Shown: positions 8,471 through 61,103 of the stretch, piece by piece
Layout of the letters: each line of letters starts with the position of its first letter
How positions within the stretch are numbered: position 1 is the stretch's first letter
Origin: Amphiscolops sp. MND2022
Lineage: Eukaryota
Assembly: GCA_964187785.1 (NCBI GenBank)
Contig: OZ076413.1
Coordinates: 47,988,001-48,052,000 of the forward strand
Reading direction: 5' to 3'
DNA: 64,000 nucleotides
The notes under the pieces: generated by a model
Seen by the model: the letters and a program-made list of their open reading frames with translations, nothing else
What the model was told of the DNA's origin: nothing
Database searches by the model: none
Position numbers and translations under genes: made by a program

Positions 8471-8537
8471 AATCAGTTCAGTCTTGCACCCTGTTACTTG
8501 CATTTGATGGCCAAATCACAAACTCAAAACTACAATA

Positions 8538-38220: not shown

Positions 38221-39126
38221 TTATTGCTATTTTTTTTACATTAGCTCTTCCAAGTGTACCCTTTTACGCCCTCAGCTCTCTAGCCTTCTGGTTTTGCTGT
38301 TGCTCCTAATACACCCACCTAAACCCCTATATTGCTCCTCTTTCATGGATTTTTTCCGCAAAAACTTTGGATTTTTTTAAATTGGTTGTTTTTTGACCGT
38401 TTTTGGACTAAATTTGTATCATAGTCCTCTCTTTGAACGTGAATGATACAGCGAGGTTACTGTGAGACTCCCCATTTCACCTAAATGTAGTAATCAGGCC
38501 TCCACGTCCCATAGCACACACTTTTACCTAGCCATTTTTCAACGAAAATAGGTCATTTTTTGACTCCTGAAAAATACGACCTTCAAAGACCCATAAAAAA
38601 CAGAATTTTCGGAATTTTGACGCCAGAAAATCGGTGAACACAGTTTTTTATAACAAACTTTTGATTTAGGCTAGAAAAAACTTGGGAAATCGAAAAAAAA
38701 ATTAAAAAGTTTTTCTGAGGGACTTTTTGGCCTTCCTATCACATATTGCTTTTTTTGTCAATTTTATGTCTTTTTCTCTAGTTTATGCGCCCGTAATTGC
38801 CACAAAATTTCTTTACTAACTCTATACGATATTCCTACGCATAAATACACTCCATGCCTAAGACTTTTATAGGTCTTTGACCCAGAAACATGTAAAATGT
38901 TTGCTATTTTTCGACTCTTTCAGATTTCTTCCAAATAAACGTGTCTTTTCTAACCTCTACGCTTGCTTTGAGCTACTTCCACAGGCTTCCTGCTGCACTC
39001 ACGCTTTTACCCACAACAGGCCCTCGCACCTTTACTGATGTCTGTTCTCTGATGAAAACATGAATGTTTTCCCAAAATACCTTAGGATCGCTTACTAACT
39101 CTCTATGTAATATCGTTATTACTTAC

Positions 39127-39600
39127 TCTGGCTCTGGAAAATTGAGCAATGGTTCGCAATGAAAGCGAGTTCTAAACCTCTCGCCTCCCTGGATGGCTTG
39201 GCACAAGAAGCTGCCTCCTCGCCCATTGCTTTCTAGGTACGTACTTGTAACGGATCCAGCCGCCCATATTCCAATACTGCCAGTATACAACGAGGTCAGT
39301 CTGTAGTACCCAGGCCGTTGCTAAGATCTGAAATCATTCTCTCGTTTTCTTATAGCCCATCATTTTCCTAGTGTAATTATTGATAATACCAGGCAAATAC
39401 TTTACCGCTGCTTCGAAAATGCTCGCTGTCACTTTTGCGCACTCCTGCTCCAGAAAATCGTTAGGAGCAATTCCAAGACACGTACGACAGTACTCTTTGA
39501 TTTCGGCACTTTGCATTGCCTTAGTAGCTGCCACACGTAGCCCTTTGCACTTCCGACTGGGTGCACTGTTCTTACGTTTTATAAATACAGGTTCTTCATG
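39127..39600 (-). pseudogene. Possible OTU-like cysteine protease (deubiquitinase) remnant
   Basis: Across frameshifts: CIYKT (Cys at 39587-39589), LRVAATKAM, ILATAWVLQTDLVVY...GGWIRY and HCEPLL (His at 39159-39161), followed by a GTAAGT donor at 39126. The order resembles the OTU Cys, middle and His motifs. Recognised by eye only. Confidence 0.4.
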
Positions 39601-42600
39601 CCTGTCCCTCCTTTTTTGGCAACCTTGTCCAGGCTATGAAAGTCGGTGATCTGGTACTATACCAGTTGCCAATAATAAAACGAGCCGTCAACATCAAATT
39701 TTGCATTTGGCTCACACTTTCTGCCGATGCTGCTTTGGAACTCCGTGAACCTATCAGTAAGGATACTGCACATCTCTCCACTAAAACAAACTCAGGATGC
39801 CGCATTTTTATATAAACTTTGTCGTGCGGTCATCAACTTCGTGGACCCAACATTTACATCCGATCAGATCTTCAATCTTGTTCTCGGGTACCCTCAATCA
39901 AAATTCTTGTGGATCTTCCCTCTCCACAATGCACTAATTGTTCTACCTTCCATAGAAATCCTCAGCCAATCTCGCATTTATGCGCTCTCTGAAAAAGGAC
40001 CTGAAGTATATACCTCAAACCTCTCTCATAGACCGTGAAGCTCTACAGAAGATTGCACAAGCTATCGTCATGCAAATGACAGCCTTGAAAAACCGGTTCG
40101 GACGCGAACTTAGTCATGTAACTTCTTTCACTTCTACAATCATAATGGGCATTGCAAGTTTCATAATATCAATGTTATTACATTTGTTTTTCATGTACAT
40201 TTTCCATCGTTGTATAATTCTACATGAATTCATACCAATCAAACATACATTACCGTGCCAAAAGTGGGTAATTTGAATTTTCGCAGTGGAATTCGATTCG
40301 ATGAAAGCGTGCAGCGTAATCCACTGACAAATGCTGTTACGTTGCAGTCGATTCCACTTTTTTGGCATTTTCTCCGCAGTGAATTTCGCTGCAATGCATT
40401 GGATTCCACTATCAAATACCTTGAACATTCGGATCTTGTAGTGGATTCCACTTCCGACGACATTTTCACCGTCGCCCAGCCGACTCCAGGTATAGCATCG
40501 ACTATTACCTTTTCTCCTCGTCGACCACCTCCAATGCATTCTACCCCTCTTTCTCGTCATACTTCATCTTCTTACCTTCCAAACACTTCTTGTTTGCCAC
40601 AAAGTCTAGGACAGACCCCGACTTTAATCCAAGCTAGCTCAACCTCTGACCACTCTGAAGGTATACCCATCATTTTTTATAGCCCATCGTTTTCCTAGTG
40701 TAATTATTGATAATACCAGGCAAATACTTCACCGCCGCTTCGAAAATGCTCGCTGTCACTTTTGCGCACTCCTGCTCCAGGAAATCGTTAGGAGCAATTC
40801 CAAGACACGTACGACAGTACTCTTTGATTTCGGAACTTTGCATTGCCTTAGTAGCTGCCACACGTAGCCCTTTGCACTTCCGACTCGGTGCACTGTTCTT
40901 ACGTTTTATAAATACAGGTTCTGCATGCCTGTCCCTCCTTTTTTGGCAACCTTGTCCATGCTATGAAAGTCGGTGATCTGGTACTATACCAGTTGCCAAT
41001 AATAGAACGAGCCGTCAACATCAAATTTTGCATTTGGCTCACACTTTCTGCCGATGCTGCTTTGGAACTCCGTGAACCTATCAGTAAGGATACTGCACAT
41101 CTCTCCACTAAAACAAACTCAGGATGCCGCATTTTTATATAAACTTTGTCGTGCGGTCATCAACTTCGTGGACCCAACATTTACATCCGATCAGATCTTC
41201 AATCTTGTTCTCGGGTACCCTCAATCAAAATTCTTGTGGATCTTCCCTCTCCACAATGCACTAATTGTTCTACCTTCCATAGAAATCCTCAGCCAATCTC
41301 GCATTTATGCGCTCTCTGAAAAAGGACCTGAAGTATATACCTCAAACCTCTCTCATAGACCGTGAAGCTCTACAGAAGATTGCACAAGCTATCGTCATGC
41401 AAATGACAGCCTTGAAAAACCGGTTCAGACGCGAACTTAGTCATGTAACTTCTTTCACTTCTACGATCATAATGGGCATTGCAAGTTTCATAATATCAAT
41501 GTTATTACATTTGTTATTCATGTACAGTTTCCATCGTTGTATAATTCTACATGAATTCATACCAATCAAACATACATTACCGTGCCAAAAGTGGGTAATT
41601 TGAATTTTTGCAGTGGAATTCGATTCGATGAAAGCGTGCAGCGTAATCCACTGACAAAAGCTATTACGTTGCAGTCGATTCCACTTTTTTGGCATTTTCT
41701 CCGCATTTATTTTCGCTGCAATGCATTGGATTCCACTATCAAATACCTTGAACATTCGGATTTTGTAGTGGGTTCCACTAAACACTGCCGTGGATTCCAC
41801 TGGACGCTGCAGTGGACTCCACCGATGGCCGCAGTGGAATCCACTATTGGCTGTAAAGGACTCCACTGCAGTGTTTTAGTCGAATTCACTGAATTCTTCC
41901 ATTACCAACCTACAAAAATTAAAAACCACCGAAAAGAAGTGGAGTTCATGTACTTCAGTGCCCAAAAAGTCTATCTTCACGTGTTCAGTTTTGAGAATGA
42001 GAAAGCTTTTCAGAATCAGCAAGTGTCACAAAAAAAGGATTCAGAACTTCTCCATTTGGTTCAAAATTATTCCCAGAGAGTTTTGTCAATCAATTTTTTC
42101 TGATACTCGCACTGTTTTACCGCTTTAGTTTGACTGTGATGTTTTTTCATCCTTTGATTGAATCATAGTAGGCATCAAAAATTCACATACAGCTTCTGCT
42201 AGTTACTTAGTTATACACACATACCTAGTTACTTTAGGTATAACTAGTTTTCATTTTTCATTTACCTCATGGTGGATACCAAAATTTGGTTCCAGAAAAC
42301 TCACGTCAATCATACTTCCAAGCTGACTGCAACGGAGACCTTATCAATCTACCACCATTCTACAAATTCAAGTTTTGTCATCTAATAAATTTTAAAGTAG
42401 CATCATATCACTGTTAGTCAAATTGCATGCTCAATATGATGCTACTTTAGAATTTATTACAAATAGTGGATATCAAATTTCACACACAGCTCTCCCGTGT
42501 ATCTAGGGTATAACTAGGTTTCATTTTTCAATGAACTCGTGGGGGATACCAAACTTTTAAATTGAATTACAAGCCGAATGAAAATCAACTTATTGCTCTC

Positions 42601-44573
42601 AATCAATCCCTCATCTAGATTCATGAAGAATATTCACGTGAAGAAACGTTGCAAGCGTTCACTAAAGTTGTATCTAGGGTATAACTGGCACATTACCGTG
42701 CCAAAAGTGGGTAATTTGAATTTTTGCAGTGGAATTCGATTCGATGAAAGCGTGCAGCGTAATCCACTGACAAATGCTGTTACGTTGCAGTCGATTCCAC
42801 TTTTTTGGCATTTTCTCCGCAGTGAATTTCGCTGCAATGCATTGGATTCCACTATCAAATACCTTGAACATTCGGATCTTGTAGTGGATTCCACTTCCGA
42901 CGACATTTTCACCGTCGTCCAGCCGACTCCAGGTATAGCATCGACTATTACTTTTTCTCCTCGTCGACCACCTCCAATGCATTCTACCCCTCTTTCTCGC
43001 CATACTTCATCTTCTTACCTTCCAAACACTTCTTGTTTGCCACAAAGTCTAGGACAGACCCCGACTTTAATCCAAGCTAGCTCGACCTCTGACCACTCTG
43101 AAGGTATACCAATATACATACCCGTTCATGAGAGTTCATCTTCTTCGTTTTCGGGATTTTCGGAAACCCTCATAAATCGAGCTCGCGCCATAACCTCACC
43201 ACTTCGAAAAGCCTCTGTTTTGGACAAAACACCCCTTTTTGACTTCTATAATACTCCTACATGTTCATGTCACCTAATTCTCAACCTTATTATTTTCGCC
43301 CACCGCCATCGCGCATTCCTGCCCTACTACCCCCACACCTATAGCCCCCCTTTTGGCTCAGAACCCTTCTGATCCCTTCCAGTTTCGATTGGTCCCTTTA
43401 CCTCGTCCACCAGCCTCCTGTGTCAGATCTCACAGATCCAACTGCCTTTGTGCGCGACTTTAATTCTACCTCTGGAGTCTCTCGTAATATTCATACTCCT
43501 ACGACCCCATGAGTCAATACGATACCTGCTACCGCTTCTTCTTATCGTCGTGACTCTAGTTTACGACCGAAACCTTGCCGCACATTCTTCTTTAACCCCA
43601 AACCATGGAAAGAAGCCTCTTATTTTTCCTTCAGTTTTTTTGCCTTTTTTCAATTTTTTTGGTTGATTATTGCTATTTTTTTTACATTAGCTCTTCCAAG
43701 TGTACCCTTTTACGCCCTCAGCTCTCTAGCCTTCTGGTTTTGCTGTTGCTCCTAATACACCCACCTAAACTCCTATATTGCTCCTCTTTCATGGATTTTT
43801 TCCGCAAAAACTTTGGATTTTTTTAAACTGGTTGTTTTTTGACCGTTTTTGGACTAAATTTGTATCATAGTCCTCTCTTTGAACGTGAATGATACAGCGA
43901 GGTTACTGTGAGACTCCCCATTTCACCTAAGTGTAGTAATCAGGCCTCCACGTCCCATAGCACACACTTTTACCTAGCCATTTTTCAACGAAAATAGGTC
44001 ATTTTTTGACTCCTGAAAAATACGACCTTCAAAGACCCATAAAAAACAGAATTTTCGAAATTTTGACCCCAGAAAATCGGTGAACACAGTTTTTTACCAC
44101 AAACTTTTGATTTAGGCTAGAAAAAACTTGAAAAATCGAAAAAAAAAAATTGAAAAGTTTTTCTGAGTGACTTTTTGGCCTTCCTATCACATATTGTTTT
44201 TTTGTCAATTTTATGTCTTTTTCTCTAATTTATGCGCCCGTAATTGCCACAAAATTTCTTTACTACTTCTCTACGATATTCCTACGCATAAATACACTCA
44301 ATGCCTAAGACTTTTATAGGTCTTTGACCCAAAAACATGTAAAATGTTTGCTATTTTTCGACTCTTTCAGATTTTTTCCAAATAAACGTGTCTTTTCTAA
44401 CCTCTACGCTTGCGTTGAGCTACTTCCACAGGCTTCCTGCTGCACTCACGCTTTTACCCACAACAGGCCCTCGCACCTTTACTGATGTCTGTTCTCTGAT
44501 GAAAACATGAATGTTTTCCCAAAATACCTTAGGATCGCTTACTAACTCTCTATGTAATATCGTTATTACTTAC

Positions 44574-45050
44574 TCTGGCTCTGGAAAATTGAGCAATGGT
44601 TCGCAATGAAAGCGAGTTCTAAACCTCTCGCCTCCCTGGATGGCTTGGCACAAGAAGCTGCCTCCTCGCCCATTGCTTTCTAGGTACGTACTTGTAGCGG
44701 ATCCAGCCGCCGATATTCCAATACTGCCAGTATACAACGAGGTCAGTCTGTAGTACCCAGGCCGTTGCTAAGATCTGAAATCATTCTCTCGTTTTCTTAT
44801 AGCCCATCATTTTCCTAGTGTAATTATTGATAATACCAGGCAAATACTTTATTAACGCCGCTTCGAAAATGCTCGCTGTCACTTTTGCGCACTCCTGCTC
44901 CAGGAAATCGTTAGGAGCAATTCCAAGACACGTACGACAGTACTCTTTGATTTCGGCACTTTGCATTGCCTTAGTAGCTGCCACACGTAGCCCTTTGCAC
45001 TTCCGACTGGGTGCACTGTTCTTACGTTTTATAAATACAGGTTCTTCATG
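44574..45050 (-). pseudogene. Duplicate of the possible OTU-like remnant
   Basis: Same motifs in the duplicated A/B block (Cys at 45037-45039; donor at 44573). Confidence 0.4.
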
Positions 45051-46962
45051 CCTGTCCCTCCTTTTTTGGCAACCTTGTCCAGGCTATGAAAGTCGGTGAT
45101 CTGGTACTATACCAGTTGCCAATAATAGAACGAGCCGTCAACATCAAATTTGGCATTTGGCTCACACTTTCTGCCGATGCTGCTTTGGAACTCCGTGAAC
45201 CTATCAGTAAGGATACTGCACATCTCTCCACTAAAACAAACTCAGGATGCCGCATTTTTATATAAACTTTGTCGTGCGGTCATCAACTTCGTGGACCCAA
45301 CATTTACATCCGATCAGATCTTCAATCTTGTTTTCGGGTACCCTCAATCAAAATTCTTGTGGATCTTCCCTCTCCACAATGCACTAATTGTTCTCCCTTC
45401 CAGAGAAATCCTCAGCCAATCTCGCATTTATGCGCTCTCTGAAAAAGGACCTGAAGTATATACCTCAAACCTCTCTCATAGACCGTGAAGCTCTACAGAA
45501 GATTGCACAAGCTATCGTCATGCAAATGACAGCCTTGAAAAACCGGTTCACACGCGAACTTAGTCATGTAACTTCTTTCACTTCTACGATCATAATGGGC
45601 ACTGCAAGTTTCATAATATCAATGTTATTACATTTGTTATTCATGTACAGTTTCCATCGTTGTATAATTCTACATGAATTCATACCAATCAAACATACAT
45701 TACCGTGCCAAAAATGGGTAATTTGAATTTTTGCAGTGGAATTCGATTCGATGAAAGGGTGCAGCGTAATCCACTGACAAATGCTGTTACGTTGCAGTCG
45801 ATTCCACTTTTTGGTATTTTCTCCGCAGTGAATTTCGCTGCAATGCATTGGATTCCACTATCAAATACCTTGAACATTCGGATCTTGTAGTGGATTCCAC
45901 TAAACACTGCCGTGGATTCCACTGGACGCTGCAGTGGACTCCACCGATGGCCGCAGTGGAATCCACTATTGGCTGTAAAGGACTCCACTGCAGTGTTTTA
46001 GTCGAATTCACTGAATTCTTCCATTACCAACCTACAAAAATTAACAACCACCGAAAAGAAGTGGAGTTCATGTACTTCAGTGCCCAAAAAGTCTATTTTC
46101 ACGTGTTCAGTTTTGAGAATGAGAAAACTTTTCAGAATCAGCAAGTGTCACAAAAAAAGGATTCAGAACTTCTCCATTTGGTTCAAACTTATTCCCAGAG
46201 AGTTTTGTCAACCAATTTTTTCTGATACTCGCACTGTTTTACCGCTTTAGTTTGACTGTGATGTTTTTTCATCCTTTGATTGAATCATAGTAGGCATCAA
46301 AAATTCACATACAGCTTCTGCTAGTTACTTAGTTATACACACATACCTAGTTACTTTAGGTATAACTAGTTTTCATTTTTCATTTACCTCATGGTGGATA
46401 CAAAAATTTGGTTCCAGAAAACTCACGTCAATCATACTTCCAAGCTGACTGCAACGGAGACCTTATCAATTCTACCACCATTCTATAAATTCAAACTTTG
46501 TCATCTAATAAATTTTAAAGTAGCATCATATCACTGTTAGTCAAATTGCATGCTCAATATGATGCTACTTTAGAATTTATTACGAATAGTGGATATCAAA
46601 TTTCACAGACAGCTCTCGCGTGTATCTAGGGTATAACTAGGTTTCATTTTTCAATGAACTCGTGGGGGATACCAAACCTTTAAATTGAATTACAAGCCGA
46701 ATGAAAATCAACTTATTGCTCTCAATCAATCCCTCATCTAGATTCATGAAGAAGATTCACGTGAAGAAAACGTTGCAAGCGTTCACTAAAGTTGTTATTC
46801 ATTGTGCTTTGTTTCGGTATGACGAAAAAAAGCATGTGTATCTGTAGCAATCAGTGTTTAAATACAAAATTGCAAGTGAAATTGAAACGAAAGTAGTGAA
46901 AAATTGAATACACAACAACGAGAAGATGAGGGTTTTGAAAACGCAATTTTCTGACGATTCCA

Positions 46963-47957
46963 TCAGTCAAATATCGACTGGGATTCTTCACGTTCCAGAA
47001 AAAGTTGATTGGCAATGGGGTCATTGTATTCAAAACGGAACTGCTGAAATGGTAGAATATCACGTGTAGCTCGGAACACTACAATCTTATTGCCATTTTG
47101 AAACAACTCTATCACTGTGGGCTTCATGTTGGCGCCGTTTGAAATCAACTGCGAGTGGTTCGCAAGGCGTCCAGGGCAGCGGATATTTGGGCGAAGGAGG
47201 CAAATCTCTTTGGAGGCATCAATGATTTCTCTAGAGGCGCCACTTTTAACCTCCAGATCGAACTCCGGCTCCACACCTTCTTTCTCGAGGACCTGGCTCG
47301 ATGACACGTTCAAATACCCCTCGCCATGGTAATCTATTAAAATGGTGTCCTTTGAAAATGTCTGTGTGGCAATCACACATCTTCCAAATTTCGACATTTT
47401 AGCTAACCAGATTCCAGGCCAAAGCTGCGTCTCACATCGTTGCGACAACATAATTTGTCCTTCATACGGCACATTATGAGCAAGTTCAGCATACCGATTT
47501 CCACTGCTCTCAGGTAACGGCGTGGATTTTCTAATTGACTGGCTGATAGAGTGAATCAATAACTGCGTTGTCACTTTTTTCACGTCCTGCTTCTTATCCT
47601 CCAGCAAACTCCACTTTTGTCGCTGGAAAAATGCCGTCACTCTTGACTCAAGACATTTAAAAGCAACTTTCCCAGAAACGTGTTCGAAGATAGCAAGGCC
47701 CTGGCTGACTGGCGAGTGTACCTTTGCTGGTCTTAGCGGGCGCGAACAGCGTTTCTCACCTCGTCTTTGTCGAAACCTTCAACATTGGAAAGAACCAATT
47801 TAATTGCATGTTTCAGCTTGGCGATTTTGAAGCAGGGGTCCTTGGAAAATGGCGTCGCGACTTTACTTTTTAAAAGTATTTTGTTCTTTTCTTTCTGCTT
47901 TTTTGCTTGAAATGAAAAGATCCACAACAGATTTAACGCGGAAGTCCGCTTCTCCAA
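46963..47957 (-). pseudogene. SET-domain lysine methyltransferase, SET8/PR-Set7(KMT5A)-like
   Basis: GRCVIATQTFSKDTILIDYHG, IIDAS, GRLANHS and VFRATRDILPFQQFRFEYND match SET motifs I-IV. The frame continues upstream through one in-frame TAA (47733-47735) into ORF 47733-47957. More fragments extend to ~48540. Confidence 0.85.
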
Positions 47958-48899
47958 TTGAATTTACAAAGAACAACTCTGTAATAAGTTGACATTTGTC
48001 GACTTTTTCGTATCAAACAATGGCTAACTTTGGAAACAAAAAATTGCCGAATTTGTGTAAAATATACTTTCCTTGCCTCAACAAGTCTTCTGGATATTTT
48101 GTGAACTGTTCGTTTCGCTGATCCATGTGTGTGTTCCACAGAGATTGAAGGCGTCGCTCAGTGACATTTCATCGTGATCCATCACGATTTGCACAACTGA
48201 ATGTACGAGACATTCCGGATGGTACTTTCAAGCATAGGTGGTACCGCACAATTGAACAGGGTTGTAATTATGCATCAAAAGAGTTCCAACTTAGCTTTTT
48301 GTACTATTCCCACGTTTTCTTTCTATGCCTTCACATGTTTAGACAACTTACTTTCGTACACGTTGTTGTCAAAGTAAGTAACTTTCGCGCATTTGGATTG
48401 GCTGTACTTAAATTATCCTCACTGCACTGGGAGTCAAATGGAAGCTTCCCAGGTGGCTCATTGAGCTGGGGTGACAAATTAGTCCGGGGACCTTATTATA
48501 CCTTTTCAAATATATTAACACTCACGAGATGAGTTTGAAAAGAAAATTGCTAGTGCTGATTTCCTTTTATTAAACGCTCGAAATGGAATGACACCTTCTT
48601 TTAGGACCATCACTGTGATAGTAGACTCTTTTTTGCGCAGTTTATGTGTTGACACCTGATACTTACTTTGCACAAAATTGAATAGTTTCTGCTCAGAGGA
48701 AGCTCACGTGTTTCTTCCGTTGAAGTCAACTTTAAACTCCACTACAATGCTTTTGCAAACTTTTAAACTATATGAAATTGTCCAAATCCTCGACCCTGAA
48801 ACCTATATTTGGGAGTCTGCAAAGATAATAGCGTTCATAAGTGATTGGTCTCTGAAAATCTGAAGGATCGACTGGAACAATAGTCTGTAGAAAATAGAA

Positions 48900-49936
48900 C
48901 TTCACCTAGAATTGCGTGCTGACCCAAATAGGTGGAACATTAGAAAAGCGCAACTTTCGCAACCAGTCATGTCAAAAAAGCGTTTTAAACCCCTGTCGTA
49001 TAACCCAAACCGATTGCAAAAAAACGAGCCCGTGTGTGGGGCATTGTTTTATTGATTCCCATGGAAAAATCAAAATAGGAACTATTTCGACGAATGACCC
49101 ATTTACCCATGAGTGTGTCGTGGGGATGGACGAAATGTTTGGAATTATACCTATTGCTGTTTGAAGAACTCAGTGGAAGACACCCATAATCACGATGAGA
49201 AAGCAGAAGACGACGAGGAAGCTGAAGAGACGAGGCAGGAACATCGGGTAGAACCAAAACAGAAAAGACCTAAAACACAAATACCGGATATAGACTTTCA
49301 ACATTGATCCCGCGATCCGATGTGGATGTCAAATTAAGCTATGTACCATGTATCGATGGAATTTGTCAAAGAGGATCCATCATTACTTTGTCTGGAATAA
49401 AATTCAAAGTGAAAGATTTGTACTACAATGCACAGAGGTTGAAACCATTTGCAATAATGGTATACATGGACGATGAAGACTGCGAACTTAGGATGACAGT
49501 AAACAATTGTTCGTTAAAGATATCGGACTATTTAAAAAACGTGGAAATCAATTTTCTCACTCTTGCTAATGATGTTGATAGAACTTTTGCAATCTTTTCT
49601 GCAAATAAGAGATGTATTGGGTTGTCGTTCAAGAAATCATCAACTGTGACAAAGATGATCCCTGCAACAGAGCTCACAAAACGTGTCTGTCGGTTCAAGT
49701 CGGACTCAAGCTAAGAAAACTTGAAATTTTCAATAGAAGTTGAAACGGGAAACTTTGGAATCTACAACAGCTTAGTTTGTATTTTGGGCCAGAACTGGGA
49801 CAGCATTCCAGATATGCTTGAAGATGAGCATGCCACCATGATCAAGACTTTGAAATTCACCGAACATCGCGACTTTATGATGTGCTCAATCAAATGCCAC
49901 ATAACTACAACTGAAGGCCACTACAAAAAAATTTAG
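48900..49936 (+). pseudogene. Decayed gene of unknown function (Cys-rich start, acidic linker, globular-looking C-terminal part)
   Basis: Consecutive same-strand ORFs 48916-49164, 49113-49307, 49304-49714 and 49721-49936, then AATAAA at 50145-50150. No family recognised. Confidence 0.5.
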
Positions 49937-50349
49937 GCAAAATTTTCAACGTGCGCTCATTGAATACTTTGTTGAACAACAGGGGTAGCATTTTTGGTAT
50001 CCACTCTGAGTAAGTGTGTGATTACTTCTCCAAAAAATTGTCTTTTTTGTTACGTTAAATAACCTGAAAGATATTTTTGTTGGTATTGCACTGATAAAGT
50101 TTTTTTTCTTAACTCGATTGTTACAGCAATATTGTCCTTGTTACAATAAATGATGTCGAAAAACTTTTTTCACTTGTGACTACATTCGGAGAAATTCTTT
50201 CCAGTAGATAATTTCAAAATATTATTTAGAACCGTTCCATATGCGTATTATTGATTTGTTACTTTGATATTTGCACTTTCCAAATTTTCAGTACAAACGT
50301 TTCATTAAACCTAATTGCATCTAGTCAAAAACTGTAAGTGGATTTGACC

Positions 50350-51545
50350 AATATGTACAAATACATTGACAGTAGATTTCACAAACAAACCTTTTAATTT
50401 TTGCAAATCATTTCAAAATGGTTACATTCAGTGAAATATTGGTTCTAAATACATTTAGGTTTCTATTGCAGTGGATTTCGCTATTCGGGAAAGTATTCGT
50501 CAACCTGCGAAAAGTGATATGTGGAATCGACTAACGTATACCAATACATTGACAGTGGATTCCACAAACAAATGCTAAAACATTCATTTGGAAACCAATT
50601 TAAAAGAGGTACATTCAGTAATTTGTTAGTTCTTAATAGAAATAAATTTCTAATGCAGTGGATTCCTCTATTCGGGAAAGTATTCTTCAACCTGCGAAAA
50701 GTGATATGTGGAACCGACTAACATATGGTATACCAATACATTGACAGTGGATTTCACGAACAAGTGCTTAAACATTTATTTGCAAACCAATTTAAAAGAA
50801 GTACCTTCAGTAAATTATTAGTTTTTAATGGAAATAAATTTCTATTGCTGTGGATTCCGCTATTCGGGAAAGTACACTTCAACGTGCGAAAATTGATATG
50901 TGGATTCGACTAACGTATACCAATACATTGACAGTGGATTCCACAAACAAATGCTGAAACATTTGCAAACCAATATAAAAGGTACATTCAGTAAATTATT
51001 AGTTCTTAATAGAATTAAATTTCTAGTGCAGTTTATTCCACTATTCTGGAAAGTATTCTTCATCCTGCGAAAAGTGATATGTGGAATCGACTAACGTATA
51101 GTATACCAATACATTGACAGTGGATTCCACAAACAAATGCTTAAACAGTTATTTGCAAACCAATTTAAAAGAAGTACATTCAGTAAATTATTAGTTTTTA
51201 ATAGAAATAAATTTCTTTTGCTGTGGATTCCGCTATTCGGGAAAGTATTCTTCAACGTGCGAAAATTGATATGTGGATTCGACTAACGTAGACCAATACA
51301 TTGACAGTGGATTCCACAAACAAATGCTGAAACATTTGCAATTCAATATAAAAGGTACATTCAGTAACTTATTAGTTCTTAATAGAAATAAATTTCTAGT
51401 GCTGTGGATTCCACTATTCTGGAAAGTATTCTTCATCCTGCGAAAAGCGAAACGTGGAATCGATAAACGTATTACAATACATTAAAACTGGGTTCCACAA
51501 ACACTTGCTCGAACATTGGCGAACCAATTCAAAAGGACTAAGTTC
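50350..51545 (+). repeat. ~187-bp tandem array, about six units, rich in GTGGAWTCCAC
   Basis: CAATACATTGACAGTGG-like starts at ~50359, 50542, 50734, 50921, 51107, 51294 and 51475. Confidence 0.95.
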
Positions 51546-51806
51546 TAAACTAAATTCTATTCAATTTAAATTGTAATAAACAATAAATTATAGATTGAAA
51601 GCTGGATACACCTGGTAACAAAAGGCATTGACAATGATGAATAGAGCGAATTCCAAGAAAAAAGTGCAAAATTACAATTTTATTTGAAGAAAATACGTTG
51701 AAATTGTCAAACAATTCGAAACCAGAACCATTAATTTCCGTAGCTCACAATCCAGTCCGTGGAAGAGATTAGTTCTTTCATCCACATTATCATTTCCCAT
51801 TCATAA

Positions 51807-54154
51807 TTAACAAACTTTAATTACCATTTTGAGGGCGTCGAGCTCACAGCTGATCTGCTCTTTCAGAAGGGTAAGTTGTCGGCTGGAGAATATGGGGCTC
51901 CATGATCCTCTCAGGGAATTGAGTTTCCTCTGGAGTTGTCGTATTTTAAACTGCAACACAGCATAAATTCTGACAACTCTAGGAAAAACCTCTTCATTGT
52001 GTACTTCCTGCTGACTGGCGTTGAGATGGCTGTCCACACTCAGAGGGAAATGGGTGACAGCAAGGAAGTTGGAGGCAAAAGCAAGGGAGTCCCCCTTTGT
52101 TGCAACTATATGCGGCCAGCGTGCAGGCAAAACGAGGATGTCGCCGGCTTCCATCACAAGTTTGTGGACGCCACCTGTCAGAACCTTCAGGTTCACGAAG
52201 AAAGTTAGACTAAATAAAAACGAAAATACATATAAACGAATTATCTGGTTCAATGATTTTGAATCATGTGCATGATTGATAATGTGCTCTTCGCAAAAAG
52301 ATGACTTTGAGATGAGCATGTTTTCAGTACATGATCTGAGTAAATTTATCTCTTTGTGGGGATATTGCTCCACTCTTCAAAGAGCTGCAAATTGACACTT
52401 GTCAGGTCCACCAGGCAGAAGATCTTCTGCCCACGGGCGACAGTATAAAAGGCAGTCGTGCTGGAGAAGTCGACATGCCACGGCGTGTCACACTTGTCGT
52501 TTGAGACAAGCAAATAATTAGATGTAGCCCCAGTGAAGTGTCCTGCTACGTCGATACACTCATCTGCTAGGTGGTCAGCCGCACAGTACCGGACAAAGTG
52601 TGGTACTTGGAAAACTAAACCAAAACGATGACTTCAGCACACGGTTTCAGAACAAATACTCCTTACAGTGGTCGCCGTTTTCAACATCCATTTAGTTGCT
52701 AAAATTTTGAAAAATAGAAGTGTGCATCCATCATGGGCCACTTTCCCCTGACGTAGTTTGAACATGTATTGAACACTGACTTTTAGCTCTGTAAAGACAC
52801 CGATTTCAAAGACTAGTTTTTTCCATATGAGCCTTTCCAAGGTATGATAAAAAACTTACATTCTGTTCAAATGCAATGTCAATGATATTGACAGAGAATG
52901 TCTTCGTAGCCGCTGCAGAGGACCCGGCTCGCTGCTCGTCCAGGTATTCGCTCTTTGCTAAAGACCTGACCTAAAATTCAACAACATTTAATTCCATCAT
53001 CCTCCTTTGAAACTACTTTACCAATATTTAGATAACTTAAAATGAAATCCGCTGCCAACGATGTCTTAATGGATACTAAATCTCAATATGTTTTGGTTCA
53101 AGGAAAACAACAATTTTTATCACTAATGGTAAAACGCTATACATGAATGAAGTTTGTGAAATTCGAAAAGTACAAAAAATGGCGGTATAATTTCACCTGT
53201 TGGTCATGTGGTAGTTGTGATGACTTTGCAGCAAGCTTCGCTGCAGGATTAGCAATGTGTTGCAGCAAGAAGTAGACTTGATGGAGGAAGTCCTCAGCGG
53301 GCAAAACTGGGAGCTTCAATCCTCGCGAGTTTATAGCCCCGTTCTTCCACAGTATTGGCTGGCCACGAGAGAGTGCTTTTATGACCATGCCTTTCATCTT
53401 CTTGCCCATTCTTCCACCTGCAGCAGTTCCATGGCTCCTCTGAAAGTGGCATGTCATCTAGGTGCTTTACGAAGACACTTGTCCCTTCGTACGCCCGTCG
53501 ACTTGGCTAGCTCGTCATTGCCATGTTGCTTTCTTTGTGGAGGGGAAAGCGTGTCAGGTGTCTCTGTAGGGAGTCGCTCCGGGCAAATTCCTCACCACAG
53601 GATGTGCAAGGATGTTTCTTGCTGGGGTCGGCTGTTCCTAAGCATTTTATGATTAAACTTTAAACTAAAAACATTGTTCGCACATTTTGACTATGATCGT
53701 ATTAGTTGTTTATTGATGGCCCAAAACAGGAAGCTGTTGATCAAACAACGCGTGACTAAATATTGAAAAAGTGTGAACAAAGTTTGTACCTAAATCCTAA
53801 ACTGTCGCGCTAAGAATAAATATAAATTTGAAGCTTTCTGATTTGTATTCACGTCTTTGTGTTATAAGATTTTCACTAATTATGAAAAGAAAGTGGCGGG
53901 GAAAAAAGAAAGAGCCCCAAATAGTTGACATAGTTGATCTACTTACTATATTTTCGTTTATTTTTGGCTATATCTGTCGTGCAGTACCTCGCATTCTCGA
54001 TGTGCCGCCTGAGGGTTACAGGGGTGGCAAAGACCATCTTGCAACGAGGACAGGCTTTGTTTTGCGGCTGCTTCGTACCGCAGGTTTTTTGGTGCCTCTC
54101 AAAATTCGCGCGTCGGTTTGACTTGTACGAACAATTGGAGCAGCTGTATTCAGT
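51807..54154 (-). pseudogene. Multi-exon gene: three C2H2/C2HC zinc fingers fused to a KDM2/KDM7-type JmjC histone demethylase
   Basis: Exons 54154-53947 (ZF1 CSNC..RRANFERHQKTC; ZF2 CPRC..TLRRHIENARYC), 53637-53197 (ZF3 CTSCGEEFARSDSLQRHLTRFPLH; GTSVFVKHL; PILWKN..GLKLP), 52970-52860 (VNIIDIAF), 52614-52350 (YLLVS..TPWHVDFSSTTAFYTVARGQKIFCLV..NLQLFEEWS) and 52209-51807 (GDILVLPARWPHIV..DSLAFASNFL). Splice phases match at three junctions. The 52860/52614 junction is out of phase and may need a decayed mini-exon at ~52698-52667. Lesions: TAG at 53507-53509, a frameshift, and an AT donor at 52349. AATAAA (minus) at 51679-51684. The first exon was not found. Confidence 0.9.
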
Positions 54155-55759
54155 CTGTAGAAACAAAAACAACACTATTGTTTAACCTCGAAGTGTCGTG
54201 CATGTACACCCCAAAATTCCAAACTGCTAAAAGATATTACAACCTGCCATTTCAAATAAAGACATGTTTTCCGATCAGAAAAAGAAGGAAACGAACATGC
54301 ACAAAAACAGAATATGCCAATATTACAAAACCCCAAATGAATTCAGAACCTCGCGCCTCCTTTTCAGTTGGTCTTTGGCATGAGAACCATAAAGTATTGG
54401 ATTGCTCCCTCTTAAAACGAGATATAAAGACCGAACTCGGGTCTTTTCTGTTTTTCCCTCATCCTATTCCTTAAAATTACCCCCAATATTTCATTTGTCA
54501 TGATAAGAATCGTAGTATATGACTCTTTTCCTAATGATTAACTTCTTAAAGATGAACCCCATCAACATTTCGATTGTAAGGAAAAGAATCGTATTATAAG
54601 ACTCATTTCCTAACGATTCACTTCCTAATGATTTTCGAGGGAAGGGAGTCAACTTGCTGGGGAGATAACAGAAAAGACCTACGAATTCTATAGCATTATT
54701 TCACTCTCCTATTTCTCTACAAAGGGTGAACAGTTTTTCACTCAGGCCTGTTCAAAGAAGATGACAGTTCAAACTCAGATTAGTTTTTACTACTCAGGGA
54801 AACCAAAAGAAACCAAAATTTTCCTTTGGTAATTCAGGAGGACTTCTTACTCACAGTGTGTACCAATTTTTTTTCTCACTCAGAATTTTTCTACTACCCA
54901 CCGTGGATATAAAAAGTTTCTATACAACTGCAGGACAAAAATTTACTCACGTTGTGTGCCAAAACCGAGTACAATACTTTACTCACAGTGTGTACCAAAA
55001 CCAAAACGGTGTGTATTAAAACTGAGTTTTTTCTACTCACGGTGGGAACTCAAATTTTTCCAACTGAATGAAATATTGTTATTTCGTATCTCAAATTGTA
55101 GAGGTAAAACACTGTGAAAAAGAAACTGACCATTATGAAAGCAGCAGGCAACGTATAAAGAATCTAGAACTGAAAGAATAATCAGACAAAGTTCAGACAA
55201 AAGCTTACAGAAGGCTTTTTGAACTAAACAAATCTAGCAAGAGGTTGAATTTAAAGATTGAACGACCAAGAATCCATTTCCTGAACTAGAAGAACATTTC
55301 CTACATCCACTTCGGCAGTCAATCAAAATCGAATTAGCATTCTCAGTTCCGTAAACTATTGTAACTGTTTTGATTTTTGACGCTACAATGGCACACAAGT
55401 TTACTAATGGACACTTTCTTCAGATTCATTCCAATTGTGCTGAGTGAACGAATAGGGTTGAACAAATGAATGGTAAACAAAATGAAACATGTTGAAGCGA
55501 AATAAAAAACGAAGAGAGCACACTCCTTCTGGAACACAAAACGATTCAAATTTTAACCTACCTAATTTTTTGAAAATGCACTTTAGATGATTGAATGTTG
55601 CATAAGTCTTGCAAAACCCTATTTTATCGGACAACTTCTGTGAAGTCACAATTTTTAGGACAAACGTTATCAAAGTTTTCTAATATTGGAAATTATGTTA
55701 ATTTTGATCAATAACTTTGTTCATGATTTCTTTCTATTCAAGGCTATTTAGACCTAATA

Positions 55760-56470
55760 ATTCACTAAATGTACGCCTTTTGAATTACTTCTCAAATGCT
55801 TAAGCACTTGTTTGCGGAATCCACTGTCAATGTATTGGTATACGTTAGTCGCTTCCACGTTTCGCTTTTCGCAGGATGAAGAATACATTCCAGGATAGTG
55901 GAATCCTTTGCAATAGAAATTTAAGTCTATTTAGAACTAAGAATTTACTGAAAGTACCCTTTTTGAATTGGTTTGCAAATGTTTCAGCATTTGTTTGTGG
56001 AATCGACTGTGAATGTATTGGTATACGTTAGTTGATTCCACATATCACTTTTCGCATTGTGAAGAATACTTTCCAGATCAGTGTAATCCACTGCAATATA
56101 AATTTATATCTATTTAGAACTAAGAATTCACTGAATGTACGTCTTTTGAATTAGTTTGCAAGTATATAAACGTTTGTTTGTGGAATCCACTGCCAATGTA
56201 TTCGCATGATAGCCCATTCCACTTACTGTTTTTCGCAGGATAAAGAATACTAGCTGAAATAGTGAAATCCACTGCAAGACTACTCAGGACTAATATTTCA
56301 CCGAATGTACCTTTTTTGTATTACATCGCTAATGTTTAGGCATTTGATTGTGGAATCCACTGTCAATGTACTTTTATATGTTGTTCAATTCCACTAACCG
56401 CTTTTAGCAGGTTGAAGAATGCTTTCCAAAACAGTGAAATTCACTGCAATAAAGTTCAAGACTATTCAGG
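55760..56470 (-). repeat. Second array of the ~187-bp unit, about four units, inverted relative to 50350-51545
   Basis: GGAATCCACTGTCAATGTATTGGTATACGTTAG is the reverse complement of the unit in the first array. Confidence 0.92.
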
Positions 56471-56816
56471 ATTTACAATTTTTACAACATAATTGGTGTT
56501 TTTTATATCCTGTGCCTCTCCCACTTGGTAGAACACTAGGTGATTTCAGCACGCTCCGGACTTCATTTTTCAAACCGTTTTATATACCACCCCAAATGCG
56601 AAAATGACCGCCAAAGATTAAACAGTTGCTATAAAGGTCTAAGAACTGCCTCCTTTTTGAGAAATACTTTTTTGGTCATATATAAAAATGTTTCTTCTAA
56701 GTTTCTGAGAAAAAAATTGTTCAAAAGCTGAATTAGTACTACAAGCAAAGATAAAAAGATATGTCTTCAAAATCATTTATTGTAACAAGCACTTGAGAGT
56801 AAAAGACGAGTAAAAA

Positions 56817-59719
56817 TCAGAGGTAAAGACGATCATCTGCTGGAGTTCTGTTATGTTTCACAAAGCCGTTTCGGTTTCTTTTCAATGCCACAATGGCTGA
56901 TGTATTCGCTATTGATTTGTTATCATCTATTTGATTCATCAAGAGTGGTCGCATGTCATTAAGTTTCATCGGATGGATCAAGAGTTCAGGCCTCATAATA
57001 TGTTTTTCAGGGTCTAGAATGACGTTAGATTCCACCATTTTGAGTACGTATTCAACAGTGATGAACAGGAAACCGCCTGATGCAAATCTTTTACAGGCCA
57101 AAGCAGCTGGAGACAACTTCTATTTTGCTGAACACTTTTCATTTTCTCTGCTTTCGGAAAAATGTCTATGGAGCTTCAGTTTTGTTCTCAAGGCTTCCAA
57201 TTGATGTTTATCGCCGGTCGAGTTAATAAGGTCCTCTTCATCGGTCGAGTTAGTAAGGTCCTCTTCATCTTTGCCAATAACGTAAAAATTCAAGATATTT
57301 GAATGCGATTTCATTAGGTTCTCTGCATTTTATTTCTCATAAACGGCACCTACTATTTCGCAAAATTCTATCTTTGAAGAAATCCTGTGTGAGCCCACAC
57401 TTGAACCTACCCACAATTGTAGATTTTGATTTTGGCACCGTCGAGAGTCTCTTCAGTCGTGAGTGTTTTTCTTTCATGTTCAATGACATTGGATATTTGT
57501 TTCGGAAATTGTTGAAGAAATATCCAGGAACCGGCAAAACGAAAAAGCAGTATCCAGAAAAAATGGACCTTGATGGTAAATGGAGCCACCGTTTCTCATG
57601 GTTCGGGATTGAAATTTTTTTTCGCATTGTGGTTCGATTTTTCCAAGCCTTTGCAGAGGTGATTCCTTGGCTTCTCAATGTACACGCTTTCAACTAGTTG
57701 GGCTATCAATGGAAGCTTGAGCTTGTATGGTGACAGCCTCTTCCGCCCGAAGAGGAGCAAATTGATTTGGAAGTATGTTTCAGCCCATCGTTTGTAAGTG
57801 TCAACATCAAACGTCCTCTGAATTTTCAACAGAATTGCACACTGGTTTAAACATTGTCGTAGAAGCTCACAAGCATCATTATTGACATATATCGTTCTTC
57901 GTTTCCTGGATTTATGGGGTCCCGTTTGTAAGATAAATATGGATGTAAAGACTTCAATACTTTTGCAGCCCACAAGTTGTATCTATCATCACTTCCAAGA
58001 AGTGTCTCAGTCGTCCAAACTCCGTCATAAAGGTTCGTGATTGTTCCATGTTGAGAACTTCTAAGTTCTTCAGTTTCATCTATAACTGCGAGACATTCGA
58101 CCCCGCTAATGACAGTGGTCCTACTGTTCCTGGGGTTTTACCTACTTTTTGTGGATTATATTGAACTGAAAAGACAGTCTTTTAGCTTCTCGGCTGGTCA
58201 GATTTTTCTCAAAGCGCTGTATGCTTAAAACTTCCCAGGGATGTTTGTCGTTAATTACCTTCTGAGCCATTCTTCTAATATCATTCTCAGTGCAATGCGT
58301 TGTCATGTGTGTACCGTTTGGGCAGACTGTTCTGACATCGAATATGCTTGCTAATGCGTCTTCCATCGACATCTGAGCAGCGGGTGGGGAAGAAATTTTC
58401 ATCGCATACATATATCGGAAGTTGTGAGGGATGAGAACTTGAACGTTCAGTTGAAATTCCAAGAACCAAACGCGTCAAGAACGGGCTGTCACCACTGTAT
58501 GTAATTTCAATGCCATTGGCTTGTATTTACTTGTAGTTCTTTTGACTGGCGGTACAGCCATCCAGACTCTTGGTTACCCAGGATAGACAGGCCAAAATTT
58601 TGTTCCATTACATATCGTCCATCTTTGCCACGACAGGATACAAAACAGAATACAGCTTTCGATGATTGGCTGCTAACTGCGATGTTCAAAATTCTGAGTG
58701 CTAGACGCGTTACCTCAACCCCCATTTCGCAACCGTCTTCCCAAATGTCAATTTATGGCTTTCAAGATTTGTTGTTTTGCAGTAAAACTAATGACGCAGA
58801 CGTCACTGTTTTCAGTAAATCGACTCGAAATCCAGAATAAGTGCGCTCAGGCTCGCAAATTGTAACAAACAATTTCATTATGAGTCTAGTGGCTCTTTTG
58901 ATGTGACGAATTGACGGTACTAGGCTACCACCTCCTAAACAAACCGAAACTAGCGTTTGTCGAATTGCTTTGAGGATATCTTCTATGTTGACAGTTTTCA
59001 TTTTGATTGAAAGTTCGTACCTAAAGCACTCGGAGGAGCCCCTGTCCATCAAAAGACCAGTGAACAAAAATCGAATGTGATTACCGCTTGCGCTCCTTTT
59101 TCGCCGCGCGATACGTTTCTGATGCTGTTCTTTGAGAATTCTGGCTGATACCTGAATAGATATACCATGCATTCTAGCAAATTTAAGGACTTTGGTCCAA
59201 AAACAGTTCTTATTAGTTCTGTTCCACATTTTGAGTTGCAATTGCGTAATATTCTTATCTGATTGTTGCTGGTCTTGTTGAAAATCAACTTCTGAAGTGT
59301 TCTGTAGCACTGCCTCTTCTTGGAGTGTTACTTCAAGGGATGTTTCTTCAACTGTCTCATGCTGAGAAGAAAATTTGTGAAAGTACCGACATCGGGCTAA
59401 AATCTGGTGTTAAATATTTTGCAACAAAGCTTCTTCACTTCTCCTCGTTCCAAGGGAAGTCTTTATAGCCCCGCAGAATTAAAAGTTCCATTATTTTCGA
59501 TGCAACTAAAACAGATCCCTGGAGCTGTCCTTCAATTGGTACTTTCTGAATAGGATCGTTTGTGTTCAGAGTGGTCCCTACGACCATTTCAGCAACGATT
59601 GAAGTAAGTTTCCTTTGACGATTTTGTAACGTGTTTCCTGTTATAAAGTCTAAAAATTTAGAATCTATGAATTCTTTCCCATCATCTAGTGATAGATTGA
59701 ACTTTTCGAATTCTGACAT
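56817..59719 (-). pseudogene. RAG1/Transib-like DDE transposase-core gene, decayed
   Basis: Ordered motifs: IDIWEDG (D at 58735-58737); RILN...GKDGRY; TYSGDSPFL..LG (D at 58488-58490); CPNGTHM; LSPYKL; LCKGLEKSNHNAKKNF (E at 57641-57643). AATAAA (minus) at 56776-56781. No TIRs or RAG2-like partner found. Confidence 0.6.
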
Positions 59720-60908
59720 TTCTAAACTTGTAGACTATGAAAGTGAGCGTGTCAATGGTGTATCAATTCGTCAATAATGATGACGCCGAAAGACTATTAA
59801 TATCCTTTTCTTTGTGTTTCAGTTTCCCTCCTTTTGCGTCTTCTGATACGCCTCAATTTTAGTTTTAACTTCAAATAAAATTAATCTTGCAACATGTTTC
59901 TCAGGTATTATTGCTTCGCACGCTGTTTAAATCTTTCTTCAAGAACTGTTTGAAAACAGTTGATTGCACGTTGAACTAAAACTACAATGTCATGGGTGCG
60001 TTCACTAGTAGGTGATAAAGTTAGGTGTGATTTTTCCCAAAAAATCATATGGAAGGATTTTTCAGTGATTTTTTGAGTTAGTGTTTTGTCTCCACTGTGA
60101 GTCAGTCGACATTGTTTGGAGGATTTTGTTGTTTTTCGACCGTGAGTTGACCGTGAATTGGAACACAGTTCAAGCACTACGAAGTTTGGCAAAAATTGAT
60201 GAAGAAAATTTTTTCAAATAGAGAACCTACACATTATCATGACAAAAAGAAAGACGTAAACAAAACTTTTAACAAAACTTTTATAAGAAGGAGTAGACGC
60301 GAGGAACGCATCAAGTGTAAGTTGTAACCATTGATAAATAGTGATTGTAAAAATCCCACTATTCGCCAATTGCTTCACAGAATTTGTATTCTGCGACCTG
60401 AAACAAAAAAATTTAAAAAAATCTGGAACTTTTTCCTTTCCCCTACACTTTTCAAGATGTTGTTTTTCCTATTACTGTAGACTTCGGATAATCGAATATT
60501 GGCTAATCCAAAATTTTGGGTAAACGCATAAAAATCCCCGGCTGTATCGAACATACTAGCATGTTTTAGTTTAATCGAATATTTCGCTCCATCGAGAAGT
60601 TTTCGCCGGTCCCGCCAGGATTCGATTAGCCGACCGTAATTAACATAACAAAAACACTTGAATACACACAAGAATTTTTCAGTTTTAAATGTATTTCCAG
60701 AGAAACACTTTATAACTGAGATACAAACGTCGTTCACCCTGTTTTCCGTATTCTTTGAAAAGTGTGGGGGACAAAGCCAATAGGCCAAAAGTCTTCCAAT
60801 AACGAGATCCTTCACGTGTTAGTTTGAGAGATATATTAAACCGAACCACCATGAAAAATTGGAAAGAAGAAATTTTAGAAATTTATCAATGTTTCATTGA
60901 TGTGTTGT

Positions 60909-61103
60909 TTCGCTGAAACTTGCAATGGATTCCACTTCAGCTTACAGTGGATTCCACTTTGGCTTACAGTCAATTCCACTCGTTTTGCATTGAATTCCAC
61001 AAGTTGGAAAGTGGAATCGACTGTACGCCAAAGTGGAATTGGCTGCAAGCCAAAGTGGAATCAACTGTAAGCTGAAACGGAATCCACTGCAAGTTTCAGC
61101 GAA
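60909..61103. repeat. 195-bp foldback with 72-bp arms built from 22-bp AGTGGATTCCACT-containing subunits
   Basis: TTCGCTGAAACTTGCAATGGATTCCACTTCAGCTTACAGTGG... pairs with ...CAACTGTAAGCTGAAACGGAATCCACTGCAAGTTTCAGCGAA, with about six mismatches. Confidence 0.9.

Follow-up and report, generated by a model that had tools for sequence, protein, structure and literature searches.

A nested DNA transposon with SET8-like and zinc-finger JmjC genes between the long terminal repeats of an acoel retrotransposon

When genes for chromatin-modifying enzymes are found between the two long terminal repeats (LTRs) of a retrotransposon, the question arises as to which mobile element they belong to and what they might do for it. 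Such genes lie in a stretch of 64,000 nucleotides from the acoel Amphiscolops sp. MND2022 (assembly GCA_964187785.1, contig OZ076413.1, positions 47,988,001 to 48,052,000 of the forward strand), which is referred to here as the window and within which coordinates are counted unless another contig is named. An earlier note, made from the letters alone, had placed a SET8-like methyltransferase, a zinc-finger JmjC demethylase, a possible OTU domain and repeated palindromic motifs at 39127-59719, as antisense cargo of one LTR element inserted in satellite DNA, and had proposed an anti-silencing system acting on histones. The window is in fact organized as three nested layers, in which a 210-bp satellite contains a Ty3/gypsy-like LTR retrotransposon, and this in turn contains, on the opposite strand, a 15.6-kb DNA transposon that we call X. 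The enzyme genes do lie between the LTRs but are housed in the nested DNA transposon, and a complete member of the LTR family (contig L018) lacks them, an absence that the note itself had named as refuting its reading. The notion of a mobile element with its own chromatin enzymes therefore holds for X and fails for the retroelement. The span originally proposed needs redrawing as well, since it starts in duplicated LTR-element sequence and breaks off within the transposase gene; the unit itself extends over 45698-61280.

The limits of X, which is read on the minus strand and is bounded by terminal inverted repeats (TIRs), are set by collinear copies, shared ends and an empty site. Copies were gathered by a search with the SET reading frame, which gave eight relatives, all in the ENA assembly ERZ25074608. 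Among the contigs fetched, L001 is the window locus itself (99.8% identical), L002 to L005 are four paralogous loci, and L006 extends L004. The paralogous copies on L002 to L006 are collinear with the window from 41.6 to 61.3 kb at 80-94% identity, and X is represented by at least five paralogous copies with unrelated flanks. All copies end at one base, ...CCCACTTTTGGCAC(G/T)GTAATG, beyond which the sequence is unrelated; the 3' end is seen in such flanks in L002, L004 and L005, and the 5' end in L006. The opposite end starts CATTACAGTGCCAAAAGTGGG, which is the exact inverted repeat. In the window, end alignment and a TIR search locate the 3' TIR at 45698-45718, where the plus strand reads CATTACCGTGCCAAAAATGGG, and the 5' TIR at 61265-61280 on the minus strand, where CATTACAGTGCCAAAA is followed by a small deletion relative to L006. 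The termini are inverted, CATTAC..GTAATG, with CATTAC(A/C)GTGCCAAAA at both 45698 and 61280.

The empty site is provided by L018, in which the outer LTR family is represented by a complete copy of 13.4 kb with LTRs that are 97% identical. Its sequence joins window position 45695 directly to about 61281, exactly at X, and it contains no X, SET or JmjC sequence. Once one TA is removed, the window and L018 are equal in length across the junction. TA flanks X at 45696-45697 and 61281-61282 in the window, and AA is found on both sides of the L006/L004 copy, which suggests a 2-bp target-site duplication (TSD), with TA as the candidate in the window. Duplications of 5 bp and 8 bp were also considered, and by eye fit neither of the two complete copies. 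A further family member, L017, matches the gag-pol region and adjoining 3' region of the outer element and does not match X, though its contig stops before the insertion site and its last 700 bp are unrelated. The TIRs, the independent copies and the empty site rule out a single giant LTR element of 31.5 kb with antisense cargo. Together with its own DDE transposase, the TIRs, unrelated flanks and empty site of X are those of a cut-and-paste DNA transposon.

The transposase gene makes up the 5' third of X. In the window it is a pseudogene with at least five frameshifts (56829-59902, minus strand), as traced by tblastn with the intact relatives P0017, P0010 and P0009. According to tblastn and structural models, an N-terminal region is followed by a DDE core of RNase-H-type, RAG1/Transib-like fold (about 58840-57440) and by a C-terminal BRCT domain (about 57780-57080), all on the same strand. 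The family was built from a 316-residue, less damaged frame of L006, and 188 homologous proteins were recovered, 41 of them at <1e-30. Intact open reading frames (ORFs) of 1027-1301 residues occur in samples from ENA, Logan and JGI, one Tara Oceans contig among them. The transposase of this family is a protein of about 1000-1300 residues, with that of the window copy predicted at about 1000. The family alignment contains the invariant motifs DxxGD, GKD, SGDxPF, CPDxxH...R..E and ExxEKSNHH.

An AlphaFold2 model of the core has a mean pLDDT of 88.8 and a pTM of 0.90. With this model, the top 45 PDB matches in Foldseek are all mouse RAG1, amphioxus RAGL or Helicoverpa Transib (E-values down to 8.6e-6, TM scores of 0.43-0.50, probability 1.0), and the P element and Hermes come next. 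The BRCT domain is recognized from weak C-terminal Pfam hits in five members as well as from its fold; a model of the tail finds its closest folds in the BRCT domains of XRCC1, BRCA1, PTIP, 53BP1 and Lig4. In nine long or intact relatives, Pfam at E<=0.01 gave no transposase match and only a weak BRCT, and neither Pfam on the ORF pieces of the window nor phmmer against the PDB identified the transposase. The protein is therefore RAG1/Transib-like by predicted fold only, and its DDE catalysis is likewise a prediction.

The SET gene lies at 46966-47778 on the minus strand, where 271 codons remain open (Pfam SET, 3e-7). An N-terminal extension of the protein, broken over three frames, is detected at 47688-48489 on the same strand by tblastn of a 443-residue ORF of L002, and lacks the first ~170 residues present in L002, a loss that also appears as a gap in blastn. 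The reading frame retains the GRLANHS and RFEY motifs, including the NHS and the catalytic tyrosine, and the window's is the only SET gene among the X copies that is not frameshifted. When a profile made from three lineages was compared with the PDB, KMT5A/SET8 matched at ~1e-10 and the next family at 1.8e-4. The methyltransferase described in the earlier note is upheld on these grounds, and the gene product is SET8/KMT5A-like, with a histone substrate suggested by its nearest solved relatives. Pfam found no N6-adenine methylase domain in the SET protein.

The pieces of the JmjC gene on the minus strand fall within 51810-52633. Two exons are recognized by Pfam JmjC/JmjC_2, one at 52349-52633 with the HxD motif and one at 51972-52217 with the second histidine, and between them there is an intron-like gap. 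The iron-binding HxD (WHVDF) and the second histidine (WPHIV) are both retained. Upstream on the same strand are three C2H2 zinc fingers, at 53942-54181 and 53510-53659 (Pfam zf-C2H2, 1e-8 and 8e-5). A profile of the JmjC domain compared with the PDB finds ceKDM7A best (1e-8), followed by KDM7, PHF8 and KDM2A, and the predicted enzyme belongs with the KDM7/PHF8/KDM2 (JHDM1-type) subgroup, as had been proposed. The PHD or CXXC reader that is typical of KDM7, PHF8 and KDM2 was not found upstream of the JmjC domain, where there are C2H2 fingers only. The possible OTU domain is withdrawn: 30 stop-free pieces taken from 46.9-61.7 kb, of which nearly all are minus-strand, were scanned with no OTU match at E<0.1, and the stretch near 57-59.7 kb is frameshifted transposase.

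The repeated palindromic motifs that had been noticed at the locus are real and strongly concentrated. There are 70 occurrences of GGAWTCCACTG when up to one mismatch is allowed, where 1.4 would be expected. Of these hits, all but two are in the subterminal regions of X, in duplicated X 3' ends or in two internal tandem arrays, and many of the sites form back-to-back inverted pairs and are partly palindromic. A motif search places the 3' subterminal cluster, partly of inverted pairs, at 45734-45990, and the 5' subterminal cluster is found at 60909-61245 by self-blast and motif search. One internal array (50327-51536) has six copies of a ~190-bp unit with the motif in each unit, and is also present in L002, L003 and L004; the other (55736-56466, from self-blast and motif search) has a ~183-bp unit. 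The two internal arrays are mutually inverted and stand on either side of the zinc-finger JmjC gene.

Some further observations concern these repeats and the copies that carry them. Just inside the 5' end of X, at 60909-61103, GGAWTCCACTG is arranged in a 195-bp near-palindrome that is 81% self-complementary, and which is also present in L006 at 6438-6620. In L005 a rearranged copy of X (3158-11648) contains the SET region twice, in inverted orientation (3511-4302 on the minus strand and 9604-10407 on the plus strand) around a shared segment of the type found at 48.5-50.5 kb in the window, and has no zinc-finger JmjC part. In L003 the segment from the array to the region upstream of the zinc fingers is duplicated in tandem (11-3554), with 11-1716 and 1833-3554 both aligning to window 56.8-54.7 kb.

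Whether these genes belong to the element in any lasting sense can be judged from more distant transposases. The SET gene adjoins the transposase gene in three further loci, two of them in other samples. In L007, from the Logan run ERR15087781, an intact SET protein of 419 residues is encoded divergently from an intact transposase of 1301 residues, and its SET domain is 29% identical to that of the window (E=1e-22, pre-SET segment included). The P0051 contig, from another ENA sample, has the same pairing of SET and transposase. The third locus, L016, represents a second family in the acoel assembly, in which the transposase is 48%, the SET domain 31%, the JmjC domain 38% and a C2H2 finger 33% identical to those of X. 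The gene order around the transposase differs from that of X. JmjC genes are seen only in the acoel families, that is, X and L016. The transposases accompanied by SET share 23-48% identity, the SET domains have diverged in step (29-31%), and the catalytic motifs of both SET and JmjC are kept across lineages. The SET gene is thus an old partner of this lineage of transposases, and the zinc-finger JmjC gene is common to two diverged families of this genome. TIRs and element ends were not definable in L007 or L016. A further seven related loci are short JGI contigs of at most 5.9 kb, with flanks too short for their cargo to be judged.

L016 also has a motif of its own, GGTTTCCACG, which is found 15 times where 0.9 would be expected and forms inverted pairs with a spacing of about 80 bp. 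It sits in a ~170-bp unit that is dispersed around the SET, transposase and zinc-finger JmjC genes (L016 3161-16336), and the core GGWWTCCAC is common to this motif and that of X. Downstream of the transposase in L007 there is, in addition, an ORF of 452 residues (8743-10101, plus strand) with weak similarity (E=6e-6) to L016 6666-6893 (plus strand). This ORF may represent a fourth gene conserved in the lineage; Pfam does not recognize it, and nothing corresponding to it was found in X.

The substitutions among the copies bear on whether the cargo was ever of use. Pairwise ratios of nonsynonymous to synonymous change range from 0.25 to 1.2, and are uninformative before the changes are split into those that are shared and those that are singletons. 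Changes of the SET gene shared by at least two copies comprise 5 nonsynonymous and 10 synonymous (omega ~0.14, binomial p=3e-4), whereas singleton changes comprise 92 nonsynonymous and 30 synonymous (omega ~0.88), and the contrast between the two classes is significant (Fisher p=0.0016). In the zinc-finger and JmjC exons there are 65 nonsynonymous and 47 synonymous changes, compared with a neutral ratio of 3.4:1 (omega ~0.41, p=5e-6). This is the signature expected of genes that were under purifying selection while the family transposed and that decayed neutrally after insertion. The cargo has therefore not evolved neutrally throughout, which is in favor of functional cargo of a DNA transposon. 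It does not consist of near-identical copies of host genes either, since the SET search returned X copies only, and the distant homologues are 29-31% identical. In the window itself, X is non-functional: its transposase and JmjC genes are broken, and so is the SET gene in its N-terminal half.

How might such cargo serve a transposon? In the mechanism that we favor, active copies of X would express the SET and zinc-finger JmjC proteins as accessory factors working on chromatin at the element or close to it. Recognition of the motif arrays as landing sites would fall to the zinc fingers, the N-terminus of the transposase, or both. The JmjC enzyme could then remove repressive methyl marks while the SET enzyme writes a lysine mark, and the outcome of such editing would be an element that stays transcribable or transposable. 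This putative anti-silencing role is the preferred reading of the cargo. Taken jointly, the anatomy set out above and an anti-silencing or chromatin-opening role are, in our judgment, probable, with considerable room for doubt.

Several points weigh against this reading. The zinc-finger and JmjC exons are treated as one gene on account of their conserved order, as the fingers also precede the JmjC domain in L016, and the histone substrates are proposed solely because of the nearest solved relatives. On L008 and L010, short contigs with only 1.7-2.3 kb of sequence upstream of the transposase, no SET gene is seen. The selection tests are simple counts over four to five old copies, and the 2-bp TSD is known from two complete copies of X and one empty site. 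No intact copy is found among the X or L016-family copies seen, and activity in this genome would accordingly be historical. Finally, profile searches gave no match at the level of sequence between the transposase and any PDB chain or models of RAG1, Transib, Plavaka or CACTA (for the last two, as far as Pfam includes them), and because of this X cannot be assigned to a named superfamily.

The same anatomy could also be explained if the accessory proteins assisted in DNA repair coupled to transposition rather than in anti-silencing, and this we regard as the strongest competitor, if an unlikely one. A RAG1-like transposase would introduce double-strand breaks, and host end-joining would be brought to the donor and target sites by the BRCT domain of the transposase and by a SET8-like enzyme. 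H4K20 methylation is read by 53BP1, and SETMAR/Metnase has been published as a case in which a SET domain is tied to repair. The RAG1/Transib fold of the transposase, the resemblance of its tail to the BRCT domains of XRCC1, BRCA1, PTIP, 53BP1 and Lig4, and the closeness of the SET domain to KMT5A/SET8 would all suit such a role, as would the fact that SET is the widest companion of the transposase (L007, the P0051 contig, L016 and X), with JmjC confined to the acoel families. However, a role in repair leaves the zinc-finger JmjC gene and the motif arrays that flank it unexplained, and the substrate specificity on which it draws is predicted at ~30% identity or less.

It is improbable that the SET and zinc-finger JmjC genes are fragments of host genes, captured passively in the manner of Pack-MULE or CACTA elements and with no role for the element. 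Large CACTA-type elements do capture genes, every copy in this genome is a pseudogene, and the JmjC gene retains an intron-like gap, all of which would fit. Yet SET is found with transposases of no more than 23-48% identity, in other samples too, and has diverged in step with them; the catalytic motifs are kept across lineages, the shared changes bear the mark of purifying selection, and no near-identical host SET gene turned up in the search. It is scarcely credible that writer, eraser and targeting module are antisense cargo of the LTR retrotransposon itself: the genes do lie between both LTRs and antisense to gag-pol, but the complete element L018 is without them and shows the empty site, L017 matches no X sequence (though its contig ends before the site), and the gene block, equipped with TIRs and a transposase of its own, occurs also in places where this LTR element does not surround it.

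A broader proposal can be put forward only tentatively, and we would not yet call it probable. It is that X and its 188 relatives form an unnamed, superfamily-level lineage of cut-and-paste transposons with a RAG1-fold transposase, present in animals and other marine eukaryotes. The core of such a lineage would be the BRCT-tailed transposase and the SET8-like gene, to which the acoel elements would have added the zinc-finger JmjC gene, giving a writer-eraser pair aimed at the motif arrays of the element itself. If true, this would be the first histone-directed system on an animal transposon, and would add a new relative to those considered for the origin of RAG.

The claim that such a system was undescribed is too strong. 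DNA transposons with SET or 2-oxoglutarate (2OG)-oxygenase accessory genes have been published, and no transposon-borne JmjC gene, or description of the X transposase family, was found in the literature searched. The closest described system is that of the giant Plavaka elements of red algae, which are related to EnSpm/CACTA, are 17-19 kb long and have an accessory cassette, PAG1-3 (preprint on the genome of Bostrychia moritziana, bioRxiv 10.1101/2025.02.11.637652). They harbor a SET-containing gene and a ParB-2OG-oxygenase gene, with inverted-repeat arrays adjacent (bioRxiv 10.1101/2025.02.11.637652). Like X, they are large cut-and-paste elements in which a SET accessory gene is joined by a gene for a DNA-binding 2OG-oxygenase with arrays beside it, and in which most copies are degenerate. 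The likeness between the cargo of X and a cassette with PAG2 and PAG3 is one of architecture only, and neither an N6-methylase nor a ParB domain was detected in X. Unlike Plavaka, X is found in an acoel, its oxygenase is of the JmjC histone-demethylase type with C2H2 fingers rather than ParB-like, and its transposase has a BRCT tail.

A wider frame is offered by the CMCT clade, which encompasses EnSpm/CACTA, Mirage, Chapaev, Transib, Plavaka, ESTA as well as Lanisha, and is characterized by 5'-CA..TG-3' termini and TSDs of 2-5 bp (PMC12730594). The account that sets out this concept also describes fungal DNA transposons that encode TET/JBP dioxygenases, which are presumed to edit epigenetic marks (PMC12730594, Biology (Basel) 2025). 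Some members, namely ESTA, resemble RAG1 by structure-based comparison only (PMC12730594). X fits this description in its CATTAC...GTAATG ends, its 2-bp TSD and its likeness to RAG1 by structure only. The defining C(2)C and H(3-4)H motifs are not clear in the alignment, which has CPDxxH and HxxExxEKSNHH (which includes ExxEKSNHH) in their place and no clear C(2)C. The enzymes differ in what they act upon, TET/JBP on 5-methylcytosine in DNA and KDM7/KDM2-type JmjC on histone lysines. SET genes are also carried by HarbingerS, Phytophthora MuDR and some Helitrons (Repbase Reports 2014, as cited in PMC12730594 and bioRxiv 10.1101/2025.02.11.637652). These resemble X in having a SET methyltransferase as a stable accessory gene, and differ from it in transposase superfamily and host; in the text consulted, no paired demethylase is described for them (PMC12730594; bioRxiv 10.1101/2025.02.11.637652).

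With Transib and RAG1-RAGL, X has in common its best and nearly exclusive structural match, as well as the sequence ACAGTG within its TIR. It differs from Transib in showing no sequence similarity, in its apparent 2-bp rather than 5-bp TSD, in a terminus that reads CATTACAGTG rather than CACNGTG, and in the lack of any RAG2-like partner that could be seen. BRCT and SET partners are not known as features of Transib. The DxxGD motif, the second Asp of SGD type and the ExxE-S-N motif of X are presumably akin to the active-site motifs of RAG1. The VANC protein of VANDAL elements (Mutator) in Arabidopsis brings about DNA hypomethylation and is not an enzyme of the SET or JmjC families. What X may share with it is the concept of an element protein that is thought to bind repeated motifs of its own element and to reverse silencing, with both binding and effect presumed in the case of X. 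SETMAR/Metnase, like X, brings a SET domain together with a DDE transposase and with the repair of double-strand breaks. However, SETMAR is a host fusion gene derived from a domesticated mariner, whereas in X, a transposon, SET and transposase are encoded by separate genes.

Transposons with chromatin enzymes are rare, and the published cases come from plants, fungi, oomycetes and red algae. In animals, a lineage that combines a histone methyltransferase with a putatively DNA-targeted JmjC demethylase and matching motif arrays would provide a testable system for the manipulation, by a mobile element, of histone marks or of break repair, and acoels have accessible stem cells. A transposase that combines a predicted RAG1/Transib fold with a BRCT domain widens the set of relatives that are relevant to the evolution of RAG. 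The locus also holds a warning for annotation, in that genes between two LTRs need not be the retroelement's own.

The outer layers of the window are as follows. The 210-bp satellite, with a higher-order period of ~420 bp, comprises about 55 monomers with 82-86% internal match and occupies 19623-31361 (roughly 19.6-31.36 kb) and 62876-63617. It is the target into which the LTR element inserted, and its 210-bp phase carries on across that element. The LTR retrotransposon as a whole runs from 31362 to 62875, between the two satellite blocks, and has two LTRs and a 5-bp TSD, CCGGT, which can be read directly from the letters on the left (31357-31361) and on the right (62876-62880). These features bear out the description of a single LTR element in satellite DNA. 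The 5' LTR (31362-31716, plus strand), TGTCATG..CATGACA followed by TGGTGAG..., pairs with the 3' LTR (62512-62875, plus strand), which is ~83% identical to it; the two LTRs of L018 and the one of L017 match it as well. A decayed gag-pol with many stops and frameshifts lies at 31923-37300 on the plus strand, with Pfam matches to RVT_1 (4e-9), RT_RNaseH (7e-8) and rve (3e-8) and a weak one to DUF1759. Reverse transcriptase, RNase H and integrase occur in that order on the plus strand of the window, and also in L017 and L018 by Pfam, and the gag-pol of the window is collinear with both at 80-85%.

The 3' internal part of the LTR element, on the plus strand at 37441-45697, has been enlarged by segmental duplications, as recognized from self-blast, a TIR search and junction alignment, and the rest of its 3' internal sequence resumes beyond X at 61281-62511 (plus strand), where it matches L018 15678-16794. 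The duplications, which extend over 37441-46795, involve segments of 0.2-3 kb that are 97-99% identical, in scrambled order, and straddle the boundary at which the LTR element meets X. Through them the 3' end of X was copied together with adjoining sequence, giving extra X termini at 40248, 41575 and 42691; because they straddle this end, the terminus is present four times in the region. Judged by identity, the duplications are far younger than the LTR element (LTRs at ~83%) or X (copies at 80-94%). The order of events is that X inserted into the LTR retrotransposon after the latter had inserted in the satellite, and that the local duplications came later.

Members of the LTR family also have two more ORFs, of 309 and 394 residues, downstream of pol (L018 13831-15935, plus strand). 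They have no Pfam match and correspond to about 39.6-40.2 kb and 61.3-61.6 kb of the window. The second of them spans the insertion site of X, which means that X interrupted a third gene of the retroelement.

The left part of the window is otherwise unique apart from two nearly perfect two-copy tandem duplications, at 1780-1968 and 3540-3790, with units of 99 bp and 123 bp. At 15143-17683 on the minus strand there is an intact, intronless gene for an Hsp110/HSPA4-like protein of 846 residues. An 85% identical paralogue is present in the same ENA data, and the best named relatives come from Convolutriloba macropyga (71%) and Symsagittifera roscoffensis (70%), both of them acoels, which places the host in that group.

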